From the NCBI RefSeq assembly GCF_006345805.1, contig NW_021836152.1, positions 62,001 through 126,000 of the forward strand: a stretch of 64,000 bases of DNA, read 5' to 3'. Below the pieces are notes generated by a model. The model worked only from the letters and a program-made list of their open reading frames with translations. It did no database searches and was not told the origin of the DNA. A program made the position numbers and the translations under genes. Positions within the stretch are counted from its first letter, which is position 1, and each line of letters starts with the position of its first letter. The stretch is from Octopus sinensis (Eukaryota). This document shows positions 1 to 64,000 of this stretch, piece by piece.

Positions 1-399
1 GGACGTATGTATGCAGGTAAGCTTGATGTATGTATGTATGTATGTATGTATGTATGTATGTATGTATGTATGTATGTATGTATGTATGTATGTATGTATG
101 TATGTATGTATGTGTGTATGTATGTATGCATGTATGTAAGTATTATGAATTGTGTACGCGTGTGTGATTTATTGTGTCACCACTATACAAAAAGGTAAAC
201 AATTCTAATTTCTTACAGAGAGAAAGTTGTGTGAAATATTTTGAGAAGAGGATTGTTGTCTATTTTAGGACCAAAGCTTTGTTGTTTACTTCACTTGACT
301 TAACATTTAGAACATACTTAAACAACCAGCCACTGTCTTGTGTGTCCCGACTACTACTCCTAGAGCCCATAGAAGATTGTTTTTAGTCAACCATCCATC

Positions 400-1860
400 A
401 TGTCAGCTACCTACGCATCGAAACTGAGATCTGCAAGTAGGGCTTCTCATCAAGATGATGGTCCTACCAATAGTCAGCTCAACGAACAGTTGCTGTTGCT
501 CAAACAAGAGGTTGAGCACTTAAAGTCTGTTGTTGCTCTCTTACTGAATAAACAGTCTCCTGTTGACGCAGAGTCACCCTTGATTTCTTCCCTGGAGACG
601 TCCAAACCGAAGGGAACAAAATCGAGGCGGCCAAATAAGGCGAAGGAACCGGCGGTCGTTTCTGCACATGATCGTTCCCGTGCGGATTCTTCCTCATCTG
701 CCTTTTCGGTCCCGGAGGTTCCCCAACCTAATTTGAGGAGCGTAGACTCAAACCCACCTGAAGACCGTTGTTCTCCCCAACAGAAGAAACGTAGTCAAAA
801 CTCCAGTGGGGCGGATTTAGCTATGAAACCTGACCACGATAAACGGTCTCCTGTTGACGCAGGGTCACCCTTGATTTCTTCCCTGGAGACGTCCAAACCG
901 AAGGGAACAAAATCGAAGCGGCCAAAGAAGACGAAGGAACCGGCGGTCGTTCCTGCACATGATCGTTCCTGTGCAGATTCTTCCTCATCTGCCTTTTCGG
1001 TCCCGGAGGTTCCCCAACCTAGTTCGAGGAGCGTAGACTCAAACCCACCTGAAGACCGTTGTTCTCCCCAAAAGAAGAAACGTAGTCAAAACTCCAGAGG
1101 GGCAGATTTGGCTATGAAACCTGATCACGATAAAATCCGTATGGGTTCTCCCTCACCTGTCCTTCCCATTAATGCCATTGCTCAACCAATTCTGAACGAT
1201 CTCGATGTGGGTTCATCTGGGGAGTGGTGCTCCCCCAAACCGAAGAAGAGGCAGTGCAGTTCCAAACCAGGCGGGAAAATTATGACCACTAAATCCATTC
1301 CGATCGACCCCACAGGCCGACATAAGTCCGATGGCTATGAAACCACCCTTTCGAAATCCTCCAATGAAGAATCGAATACCGCAGCTCATAGTAGAGAACT
1401 TTTTGCCCACTCAAGATCGGCAATAATATATGGCAAGGCTGAATCCACCTGTGATACAGGCATAAACCGCCTAAAAGATGACATTAATTTTGTTTCCGTT
1501 TTGGTTGGAAAATTGTTCTCTGTGAACGAAAATGTCAGTGTTCTTAAGGTCGCTCGGCTAGGAAGATTCCAAGCGAATCCAACCGCAGATACTAGACCAC
1601 GCCCAATAAGGGTAATCTTTTCTTCTGATCGGGAGGCTTCAGTCTTTCTGAACAGAGCTCAGACGCATGCCTGGGAGGACCCCAATATGGGTTTTCGCGA
1701 GGAATACTCACTAAGAGAGAGAATTCGCCGGAGGAACCTGATATCCGAGCTAAAGATGAGGAAACAAATGGGAGAGAAGGGTTTACGAATCCAAGATGGA
1801 CAGATAATCAAGTCCTACCTCTGGTCCCATGCTGTAGTGCTGACAGGGAAAGTGATGTGA
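400..1860 (+). CDS. LINE A ORF1 protein (486 aa): coiled-coil-like N-terminus, internal 97-aa tandem repeat, C-terminal RLGR...RPRPIRVIF region
   Basis: Long open ORF directly upstream of and overlapping the endonuclease-RT ORF. The RLG..RPRPI motif is typical of LINE ORF1 RRM/CTD regions. Confidence 0.85.
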   Translation: MSATYASKLRSASRASHQDDGPTNSQLNEQLLLLKQEVEHLKSVVALLLNKQSPVDAESPLISSLETSKPKGTKSRRPNKAKEPAVVSAHDRSRADSSSSAFSVPEVPQPNLRSVDSNPPEDRCSPQQKKRSQNSSGADLAMKPDHDKRSPVDAGSPLISSLETSKPKGTKSKRPKKTKEPAVVPAHDRSCADSSSSAFSVPEVPQPSSRSVDSNPPEDRCSPQKKKRSQNSRGADLAMKPDHDKIRMGSPSPVLPINAIAQPILNDLDVGSSGEWCSPKPKKRQCSSKPGGKIMTTKSIPIDPTGRHKSDGYETTLSKSSNEESNTAAHSRELFAHSRSAIIYGKAESTCDTGINRLKDDINFVSVLVGKLFSVNENVSVLKVARLGRFQANPTADTRPRPIRVIFSSDREASVFLNRAQTHAWEDPNMGFREEYSLRERIRRRNLISELKMRKQMGEKGLRIQDGQIIKSYLWSHAVVLTGKVM

Positions 1861-60900: not shown

Positions 60901-63129
60901 CTTCATCAATAATGTCTTTCATTTCTCTCCCAAACAATCTTGCCATTCAGAATATGCCACACTTCTGATGTCTTAAAACAATGATAAACTTCTTACTCTG
61001 CTCATCTTCCTTTCTTTGATATAAATGTTGCGTTGTTTATTTTTTTGCAACTTTGTGTTGCTTTTTGTGGTCCCATTTTGCCAATCTTTCCAAGCCCGTC
61101 CCTAACTTACGTGGCCCTTTCTATGCAGCTATTCCGCTACATATACAAATTACATATGTATATGTGTTTGTGCGTGTTTGTATACATATATATACACATA
61201 TATACAGGACAGTGCTTATAGCACCTGGAAGACATCTCCTCCAGTTGGCTAATGACACACAGTCTGTGTCCGATTAGTATTTGCAAGGGGGTTCATCGCT
61301 CCCATGTCTAACCATACGTCATACACACGGATGCAAGTTTCTGGGTGATTACCTCCCCTCCCACCGAGCATGTGTTAATCACTAGCAAGTGATGAAAGTT
61401 CATTCCACTCGCAAATTATTATATACCTTTCTAGCGACTCACAGTCGCTAATCTCGTAAAAGAGAGAGATATGTTATTTTAAATTTAATATAACATATAC
61501 AGATTTAATATAACATATCTCTCTCTTTTACGAGATTAGCGACTGTGAGTCGCTAGAAAGGTATATAATAATTTGCGAGTGGAATGAACTTTCATCACTT
61601 GCTAGGATTAACAATGCTCGGTGGGAGGGGAGGTAATCACCCAGAAACTTGCATCCGTGTGTATATAGTTTACAATTCCGTACTGCTACTGTTTATATGT
61701 CTCTCAGAAATTTTATACAAGATATGTATGCATGTATGTATGTATGTATGTATGTATGTATGTATGTATGTATGTATGTATGTATGTATGTATGTATGTA
61801 TGTATGTATGTATGTATGTACGTATGTATGTATGTATGTATGTATGTATGTATGTATATATATATATATATATATATATATATATATATATATATATATA
61901 TGTATGTGTGTGTGTGTGTGTGTGTGTGTGTGTGTGTATTTATGTATGTACTTGGTAAGGTGGACACCCTTCGTTTAACTCCCTGCAGGTCGAAATGCAA
62001 ACTATTTCAAAGGCCGGGTGATCACAGGAGAATCAACAGCCCTCCAATGGCTGGGAGTGCGATATAACTGCTTTTGTTGTGACATCTCTCTTTTGTAATA
62101 CTTATGATGTAGAATAGTTGTTTGTTTGGCAGGAATGTATTGGCTGTTTGGGGAGGGAGTCGGAATTGCCATGTGCAAAGGTTCTCTCCTTCTATTTTTC
62201 CTCAGACGCAGCCAAAACGCACAGCCTTCGAACGACAAGGCACATAGCCTGCGATCGGCAAAACACAAAGTTGAAAATTTCATGAGAGAACAAAGGTATG
62301 AGTCAGGGAAGATGGTAAGTCTCTCAAAAACTGCAGCAGGAAGTCTCCTTCGTTAGTATGTCTTTGATTGCGCAAAAGTGTTTAGATCCCTAACAGGACT
62401 AAAAGATACACGTCCCTGCTTCGTTGAGTAAACAAATGTGGCATATTTCGGAATCAAGTTGCAACCATAACATGTGTGTGTTTGTTTATGTGTCATTGTA
62501 TGCCTTTCTGTTTGGGTGTATGTGTGTGTTTTTAGAGGACATGAATTACGTATTTCATTTTAATAAGCTCACTGCAGTTTCTAGTAGTTACAGTGCATGC
62601 AGAGATGGGTGCTTGGGAATAAGCTTATAGTTTCTTCGAAGCTTCTAAAACGATATATAAATATGCATATATGTGTTTGCTTAAGATTGTTTGAATGCGT
62701 CTGTGTGTATGCAGTGGGGACCGAAGATCTTTTTTGTTTCCAAAAAATTACTATGTTAGTCGGGAATCGCAATTTGTAACAAATGGACACATTTTCATGT
62801 ATTCTATGTTGTAGCAGACCAGAAACATATAAAACAGTTATGCTCTGAAAAATCTTGGTCCCGGCAATTTTTTTGGGTCGGATGTGCCAGAAAGGGTGTT
62901 ACCCGGGCAACTAGGGCAACACCCCTGCCTCAACCACTGGTATCTATGTAGACATGTAAGCTTGTTGCATTTATATGTGGATGGATGGACGTATGTATGC
63001 AGGTAAGCTTGATGTATGTATGTATGTATGTATGTATGTATGTATGTATGTATGTATGTATGTATGTATGTATGTATGTATGTATGTATGTATGTATGTA
63101 TGTGTGTATGTATGTATGCATGTATGTAT

Positions 63130-64000
63130 GTAAGTATTATGAATGTGTACGCGTGTGTGATTTATTGTGTCACCACTATACAAAAAGGTAAACAATGCTA
63201 ATTTCTTACAGAGAGAAAGTTGTGTGAAATATTTTGAGAAGAGGATTGTTGTCTATTTTAGGACCAAAGCTTTGTTGTTTACTTCACTTGACTTAACATT
63301 TAGAACATACTTAAACAACCAGCCACTGTCTTGTGTGTCCCGACTACTACTCCTAGAGCCCATAGAAGATTGTTTTTAGTCAACCATCCATCATGTCAGC
63401 TACCTACGCATCGAAACTGAGATCTGCAAGTAGGGCTTCTCATCAAGATGATGGTCCTACCAATAGTCAGCTCAACGAACAGTTGCTGTTGCTCAAACAA
63501 GAGGTTGAGCACTTAAAGTCTGTTGTTGCTCTCTTACTGAATAAACAGTCTCCTGTTGACGCAGAGTCACCCTTGATTTCTTCCCTGGAGACGTCCAAAC
63601 CGAAGGGAACAAAATCGAGGCGGCCAAAGAAGGCGAAGGAACCGGCGGTCGTTTCTGCACATGATCGTTCCCGTGCGGATTCTTCCTCATCTGCCTTTTC
63701 GGTCCCGGAGGTTCCCCAACCTAATTTGAGGAGCGTAGACTCAAACCCACCTGAAGACCGTTGTTCTCCCCAAAAGAAGAAACGTAGTCAAAACTCCAGT
63801 GGGGCGGATTTAGCTATGAAACCTGACCACGATAAACGGTCTCCTGTTGACGCAGGGTCACCCTTGATTTCTTCCCTGGAGACGTCCAAACCGAAGGGAA
63901 CAAAATCGAAGCGGCCAAAGAAGGCGAAGGAACCGGCGGTCGTTCCTGCACATGATCGTTCCTGTGCGGATTCTTCCTCATCTGCCTTTTCGGTCCCGGA
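63130..64000 (+). mobile_element. LINE A third copy (5'UTR and ORF1 from ATG 63393, runs off the window)
   Basis: Direct repeat of 140-1010. Window position 1 recurs at 62987. Confidence 0.93.

Follow-up and report, generated by a model that had tools for sequence, protein, structure and literature searches.

How does a transposon-rich segment of some 30 kb come to lie in alternating orientation, and are its copies joined in the genome as they are in the assembly? The question is raised by a 64,000-nt stretch of Octopus sinensis DNA (NCBI RefSeq assembly GCF_006345805.1, contig NW_021836152.1, positions 62,001 to 126,000 of the forward strand), called the window below and used for all coordinates. 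A sequence-only reading of the window had described it as an alternating head-to-head and tail-to-tail array of an ~31-kb unit. Our analysis makes it likely that a gene-free, transposon-rich segment of ~30 kb underwent inverted amplification, giving at least three copies in the order direct-inverted-direct, with two inverted junctions of different types.

Three arms in alternating orientation

Self-BLAST of the whole window, from which all inverted and direct matches below derive, divides it into three arms around two axes:

1..20139, + strand: arm 1, direct copy, whose outer ~9 kb are cut off by the window start (inverted match to 23638-44235)
20140..23637, + strand: spacer of palindrome 1, 3,498 bp, unique, with no inverted partner in the self-BLAST
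23632..23650: junction 1, where the interior of a LINE (long interspersed nuclear element), LINE-B, meets the inverted interior of a Penelope-like element, PLE-1b
23638..53672, - strand: arm 2, inverted copy of ~30 kb, the sole complete unit (self-BLAST)
53673..53855: axis 2, (TA)~90, 183 bp, the spacerless centre of palindrome 2
53856..64000, + strand: arm 3, direct copy, truncated by the window end (inverted match to 43230-53672)

Arms 1 and 3 both run off the window, and the order is direct-inverted-direct (+, -, +); the inner part of arm 2 partners arm 1 and its outer part partners arm 3. In palindrome 1, bases 28-20139 pair inverted with 44207-23638 as six collinear blocks of 96.2-99.2% identity, gaps counted (28-4161 with 44207-40076, 8791-9177 with 40072-39674, 9156-10155 with 38578-37596, 10124-12687 with 33586-31027, 13464-18458 with 30217-25234, and 18479-20139 with 25297-23638). 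In palindrome 2, bases 43230-53672 pair inverted with 64000-53856 (43230-45064 with 64000-62135, 45363-46666 with 61567-60264, and 47270-60250 with itself). These collinear matches extend over 20 kb and 10.5 kb and through several unrelated transposons, and matches of 10-20 kb over different transposons far exceed chance. Arms were aligned segment by segment, a global MAFFT alignment having been discarded as misleading across non-homologous stretches.

A direct repeat is also present: bases 1-1007 match 62987-64000 at 98.6% identity, which gives a period of 62,986 bp, supported by this ~1 kb alone, namely the 5' part of the element LINE-A. The flank of the repeat is shared as well, since 44208-45064 matches 62986-62135, so that the arm 3 copy has the same context as the arm 2 copy. 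The layout given by the sequence-only reading, alternating and inverted about two axes (here the spacer at 20140-23637 and the (TA)n at 53673-53855) with position 1 recurring at 62987, is thus borne out, and the self dot-plot it had proposed as a check, done here as a self-comparison of the window, returns three arms and two axes. Its ~31-kb unit and its period hold as numbers (~30 kb and 62,986 bp); what they describe is one complete unit and a recurrence of about 1 kb.

Junction 1 is a fusion of two internally cut retroelements

The elements that meet at junction 1, and the intact counterparts with which they can be compared, are as follows:

18959..20935, + strand: PLE-1b, a Penelope-like element with two open reading frames (ORFs), straddling the end of arm 1 (Pfam)
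~21745..23641: 5' fragment of LINE-B in the spacer, 3'-truncated, with homology to 49591-51513 and 57943-56020
49591..53672, + strand: LINE-B in arm 2, with ORF1-like, AP-endonuclease and reverse transcriptase (RT) regions and (TA)n on either side (49445-49590 and 53673-53855)
57943..53856, - strand: mirror copy of LINE-B in arm 3

On the + strand the sequence runs ...CTTTGTAGACA up to the join and ACATTTCTCATTG... beyond it. Homology to both full LINE-B copies ends at 23641 (...GTAGACA), within the endonuclease-coding part, and the inverted PLE-1b starts there; this inverted copy, in arm 2, is truncated at the position equivalent to 20139. Next to the LINE-B fragment, the spacer holds the 3' part of PLE-1b (the GIY-YIG portion of the ORF at 19739-20935), and its Pfam domains are GIY-YIG, Myb/SANT-like and AP-endonuclease. 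At the junction itself LINE-B and PLE-1b are both cut internally, both without their 3' ends, and joined head-on. Retrotransposition by target-primed reverse transcription preserves 3' ends. Because it cannot yield two partners that both lack theirs, we take junction 1 to be a DNA breakpoint and not an insertion boundary.

The two edges of the spacer share a short inverted microhomology: GACA at 23638-23641 and TGTC at 20136-20139 are reverse complements, with one extra A at the join. Among 20,000 spacers simulated in the window, 0.5% had at least 4 nt of inverted microhomology by chance. Human fold-back inverted duplications likewise have a single-copy spacer between direct copy and inverted copy; its length ranges from 766 to 70,466 bp, with a median of 3,428 bp over 21 sequenced junctions (3,498 bp here), and a short inverted microhomology, of 2-8 bp in 13 of the 21 (4 nt here), lies at the boundary of spacer and inverted copy (Hermetz et al. 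2014, PMC3907307). By this analogy, a spacer of typical size, together with a short inverted microhomology if the extra A is allowed for, supports a fold-back anatomy for junction 1.

Could the join be an error of assembly? The 41-mer across junction 1 occurs once in the window, and there is no shared repeat there able to mislead an assembler; since the junction is a unique fusion of this kind, palindrome 1 is very probably real. The most radical doubt is that the locus is single-copy and that both inverted joins are chimeras of two haplotypes. Divergence of 0.6-1.1% between arms, together with insertion and deletion polymorphisms, could be allelic, and three ORFs of the window, looked up as exact proteins, have no match in the public index of encoding contigs, so that there is no independent assembly for comparison. 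Such an account would nevertheless require inverted joins to have arisen falsely, and independently, at two places 30 kb apart, one of them the specific fusion of a truncated LINE-B with an inverted, truncated PLE-1b, and it has to deal with the fact that arms 1 and 2, 2 and 3, and 1 and 3 are each distinguishable somewhere. We regard it as very improbable.

We also considered whether the transposons could have made the structure on their own, without segmental duplication, either as the inverted pseudo-long terminal repeat (pseudo-LTR) of a Penelope element or as two LINE-B copies inserted tail-to-tail in one (TA)n. Penelope-like elements often have an adjacent inverted, 5'-truncated copy, which sits at the element's 5' end, and they favour (TA)n targets (PMC8557442); here, too, Penelope-like elements lie at the junction, and LINE-B, the Penelope-like element PLE2 and a 492-bp tandem array all lie within (TA)n. 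The inverted PLE-1b copy, however, is on the wrong side (3'), has the wrong type of truncation (3') and is set apart from the element by the LINE-B fragment. Moreover, the arms continue for tens of kilobases: the homology of palindrome 1 runs 18 kb past the element through unrelated transposons, and palindrome 2 reaches at least 6 kb past LINE-B into non-LINE DNA. Both the pseudo-LTR and the twin LINE insertion were rejected on account of arms extending so far past the elements concerned, and an origin of this sort is scarcely credible.

The LINE-B fragment of the spacer (21745-23641) is itself a mosaic. Its first ~850 bp are rich in private differences; the closing ~900 bp hardly differ from the arm 3 copy, the arm 2 copy having 17 private differences there. 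This mosaicism suggests that LINE-B copies have exchanged sequence.

Junction 2 lies within (TA)n

Axis 2 has a different anatomy. The tail repeats of LINE-B, (ATCAAAGT)n, face each other over (TA)~90, with two units on the left and three on the right. There is no unique spacer, and differences between the arms reach the very edge of the tract, in the number of tail units (x2 against x3) and in one-sided interruptions. The exact breakpoint is irrecoverable because (TA)n is self-complementary. A self-complementary tract is a plausible site for hairpin-capped breaks. By analogy, and in the light of the model of origin-dependent inverted-repeat amplification (PMC10766186), the (TA)n of axis 2 is a plausible site of either such a break or a strand switch; either would give a palindrome without spacer.

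The same tract is the sole place in the structure where an assembler could wrongly fold back. A partial artefact would then leave palindrome 1 real and make the fold-back at (TA)n false, the assembly re-entering the other haplotype in reverse-complement form, so that arm 3 and the 62,986-bp period would not lie on one molecule. The tract offers no unique junction sequence, and the 1.07% divergence between arms 2 and 3, along with indels of up to ~590 bp, could be allelic. The only region present in all three copies (~1 kb) fits as well: there arms 2 and 3 agree at all 8 substitutions and at one indel that separate arm 1 and differ from each other solely in the length of an (ATGT)n, in which arm 3 resembles arm 1, a combination to be expected if the haplotype changed at the microsatellite. 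A false fold-back, however, needs an absence of spanning reads over a tract of only 183 bp, which long reads span easily, and the differences that reach up to the tract mean two distinct copies regardless. We therefore consider a false fold-back unlikely and, as the tract is short for long reads, junction 2 probably real.

The arms have diverged by substitution, insertion and loss

The features that bear on the differences between the arms are:

148..4429, + strand: 5' part of the arm 1 LINE-A (CR1-like), containing ORF1, AP-endonuclease and RT (Pfam)
3719..7818, + strand: 4.1-kb segment that arm 1 keeps and arm 2 lacks (three-way alignment)
15474..17627, + strand: PLE-1, with an ORF of 717 aa carrying RT and GIY-YIG, intact in arm 1 (Pfam)
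~33631..37595, + strand: PLE2, ~4 kb, private to arm 2, within (AT)n (Pfam; ORF at 34920-36785)
38574..39633: tandem array of 492 bp x2.2, private to arm 2, inside (TA)n (TRF)
46667..47256: ~590-bp segment of arm 2 that arm 3 lacks, the deletion edges showing CAC microhomology

At non-microsatellite sites, arms 1 and 2 differ by 83 substitutions in 13,524 (0.61%) and arms 2 and 3 by 95 in 8,881 (1.07%). Transitions are in excess, with 116 against 60 transversions in palindrome 2 and 26 against 9 in LINE-A. Both private insertions of arm 2 have an empty counterpart in arm 1, where the (AT)n at ~10124-10185 is unbroken at the site of PLE2 and the (TA)n at ~9136-9177 is uninterrupted at the site of the 492-bp array.

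Losses are equally readable. In arm 1, LINE-A contains a 711-bp direct repeat (3719-4429 and 7819-8529, 96.6% identical, that is 3.4% apart), and the 3' part of the element continues from 7819 to ~9140. In the three-way alignment the LINE-A of arm 2 is a recombinant, which upstream follows copy 1 of the repeat and within the 711 bp carries variants of copy 2. Because the element is a recombinant of both repeats, arm 2 must have lost the 4.1 kb by recombination between them. Arm 2 also lacks a further 529 bp, deleted at GTAAAGGACC microhomology.

The transition bias, the empty and filled sites of PLE2 and the recombinant LINE-A of arm 2 all look biological. A fold-back artefact within a single read molecule (a missed adapter or a template-complement read) is ruled out by the private insertions (4 kb and 1.1 kb), the 4.1-kb recombination deletion, the transition-biased substitutions and the 3.5-kb spacer; moreover, no SMRTbell adapter was found in the window. 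The sequence-only reading had listed private arm features (PLE2, the 492-bp array, deletions and substitutions), all of which we find, and had judged a simple fold-back read artefact unlikely, a judgement that can now be sharpened to exclusion.

Divergence is unevenly spread along the arms. The index of dispersion of the substitutions is 4.6 for one pair and 4.2 for the other, and a 3.3-kb tract across PLE-1 (14320-17570) has no substitution at all between arms 1 and 2, although the PLE-1 of arm 2 (26060-28214 region) carries a frameshift, one A more in an A-run (15991/27697). This patchiness suggests gene conversion from arm to arm. An attempt to date the two junctions relative to each other was abandoned: overall divergence would make palindrome 2 the older (1.07% against 0.61%), while the 1 kb present in three copies groups arms 2 and 3, and any such ordering is unreliable because divergence is patchy.

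Several smaller observations belong to the arms. Tracts of (TA)n host three separate insertions (PLE2, the 492-bp array and LINE-B), the tract of the partner arm being unbroken for the first two. Judging from these sites, (TA)n looks like a favoured insertion target in the Octopus sinensis genome, a preference also reported for some Penelope-like clades. Arm 3 contains a near-perfect local hairpin of 344 bp (61321-61664), with arms 99-100% complementary and an 18-nt loop; its equivalent in arm 2 (45258-45714) is only 79-86% complementary, which explains one cluster of differences between the arms. Finally, the first ORF of LINE-A carries a 291-bp tandem duplication (two copies, 94-96% matches) in all three arms, at 548-1134, 43103-43689 and 63541-64000.

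A model for the origin of the structure

Inverted amplification through two different junctions, which we favour, could have proceeded in the following way. At junction 1, a break or a stalled fork within LINE-B would leave a free 3' end (...GACA), which would fold back 3.5 kb upstream and prime on the TGTC within PLE-1b; reverse copying of the upstream DNA would follow, with the 3.5-kb loop remaining as the single-copy spacer. At junction 2, a long (TA)n able to form a hairpin would have been broken or have hosted a strand switch, with a spacerless palindrome as the result. The changes since formation comprise 0.6-1.1% divergence, private insertions of a Penelope-like element and a tandem array into (TA)n, and losses at direct repeats and at microhomology. 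Three readings suit the visible arms to the same degree: an inverted triplication, a palindrome that was afterwards doubled in tandem, and the beginning of an array with more units. The structure probably has no function of its own.

Five points weigh against this model. The microhomology at junction 1 requires a 1-nt insertion, and read without an indel the join is blunt. Axis 2 has no diagnostic breakpoint, (TA)n being its own reverse complement. The physical linkage of the arms would be that of the assembled window sequence alone. The three-copy region of ~1 kb would be compatible with just two sequence types, arms 2 and 3 being the same in substitutions. And 0.6-1.1% divergence is within the range expected for alleles of polymorphic invertebrates.

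The sequence-only reading had attributed the locus to an inverted amplicon array made by repeated fold-back, by breakage-fusion-bridge or template-switch amplification. Two inverted junctions, the first of fold-back type, agree with that; the array and the repetition do not follow from three arms. A longer alternating array built by repeated breakage-fusion-bridge cycles would account for the alternating orientation and for a fold-back-type junction with a spacer, as in the amplicons of tumours and yeast, where copies alternate head-to-head and tail-to-tail across fold-back junctions. Those amplicons, however, consist of unequal segments and suffer distal loss: each cycle breaks at a new place, so that unequal units are expected and not a fixed period, and the constant period seen here, if real, argues against the mechanism. 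Only three arms and two junctions are visible, and neither telomere repeats nor a healing site is seen in the window. An inverted triplication, or a palindrome duplicated in tandem, needs fewer events (PMC10766186), repeated breakage-fusion-bridge is the least economical model, and we think it improbable here.

A further thought concerns retention of the locus. Inverted copies of 20-30 kb, with LINE and Penelope-like elements that look active, around a 3.5-kb loop might be transcribed as a long hairpin RNA, which might feed small-RNA silencing of the resident LINE and Penelope families, so that the locus would be retained and homogenised. Natural 'transposon killers' of this kind include maize Mu killer and the Drosophila hairpin-RNA genes. 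For the Octopus sinensis locus both the transcript and its silencing role are distant prospects.

Comparison with known inverted duplications

Human fold-back inverted duplications resemble junction 1 in spacer and, with the extra A allowed for, in microhomology, as described above, and differ in being terminal, recent and pathogenic, with distal deletion and telomere healing (PMC3907307). The Octopus sinensis locus instead continues to a second inverted junction, its copies are ~0.6% diverged and it bears no genes.

Direct-inverted-direct order with two palindromic junctions, one of them at self-complementary sequence, is shared with origin-dependent inverted-repeat amplification (ODIRA) and with the duplication-triplication/inversion-duplication structures (DUP-TRP/INV-DUP) described by Brewer et al. 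(2015, 2024; PMC4689423, PMC10766186). Yeast ODIRA junctions form at inverted repeats of 5-6 bp lying 40-80 bp apart, in contrast to the 3.5-kb loop of junction 1; the (TA)n of axis 2 is compatible with such short inverted repeats, and axis 1 would be compatible only as a secondary rearrangement, as which the authors regard enlarged spacers (PMC4689423, PMC10766186).

A resemblance to the palindromic amplicons of sex chromosomes or subtelomeres had also been suggested. The primate sex-chromosome palindromes P1-P8 have arms that are ~99.97% identical and carry testis-expressed gene families. They share with the present locus large arms around a unique spacer and a patchy similarity suggesting arm-to-arm conversion. 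The likeness is nonetheless loose: arm identity here is 98.9-99.4% (not >99.9%), with indels on the kilobase scale, and the content is transposons and no host genes. For a subtelomere nothing speaks in favour, the window containing no telomere repeats.

We conclude that the locus is a clear but ordinary case of a known class of rearrangement, fold-back inverted duplication or inverted triplication, in transposon-rich DNA; it raises no new question and bears no gene. If reads confirm it, it would show cleanly, in the germline of a non-model animal, two textbook routes to inverted duplication side by side: fold-back with a kilobase-sized loop and microhomology, and a spacerless palindrome with a long (TA)n at its centre. 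If so, (TA)n would be both the preferred landing site for three insertions and a likely site of breakage or strand switching. Such loci bear on assembly quality control and on the expansion of transposon-rich regions, and are possible sources of double-stranded RNA against transposons.

Sequence content of the window

The window has a GC content of 39% and consists of CR1-like LINEs and Penelope-like elements together with microsatellites and a single decayed 5S pseudogene. Its long ORFs are retroelement-derived without exception, and the Pfam domains are RT, AP-endonuclease, GIY-YIG and Myb/SANT-like only. The remaining 17 kb were scanned against Pfam as stop-free segments of at least 55 aa, none of which gave a match. 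At the sensitivity of the Pfam scan there is no host gene as cargo, as had been surmised from the letters. No tRNA genes were found in the window.

One sequence gave an Rfam match above threshold:

5100..5218, - strand: 5S rRNA-like sequence, full-length, 69 bits

It lies in the 4.1 kb kept only by arm 1. Helix I is disrupted and GC is 0.41, and this decayed sequence probably represents a pseudogene or an element derived from 5S. At a permissive threshold Rfam added only chance microRNA matches on (AT)n and one weak hammerhead ribozyme, HH9, at 18291-18355 (+ strand; 22.9 bits, E 0.044, below the Rfam threshold), which lies between PLE-1 and PLE-1b. Penelope-like elements usually carry hammerhead motifs at such places.

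Among the elements themselves, the RT of LINE-A has as its nearest named relatives RT annotations from bird, turtle and trematode, which we take to be CR1 elements and from which the CR1 label derives. The three Penelope-like elements all combine RT with GIY-YIG. PLE-1b is only distantly related to PLE-1 at the protein level, while the PLE2 ORF (34920-36785) is 57% identical to PLE-1. The best relatives of the Penelope RT are metagenome contigs, at 61% identity; named matches are host contamination within genome bins of clam (bivalve) symbionts. In a related metagenome contig, ENA ctg67919_1x_c, at least four Penelope-like ORFs follow one another on the same strand within positions 1-10479, a partial-tandem arrangement typical of Penelope-like elements.

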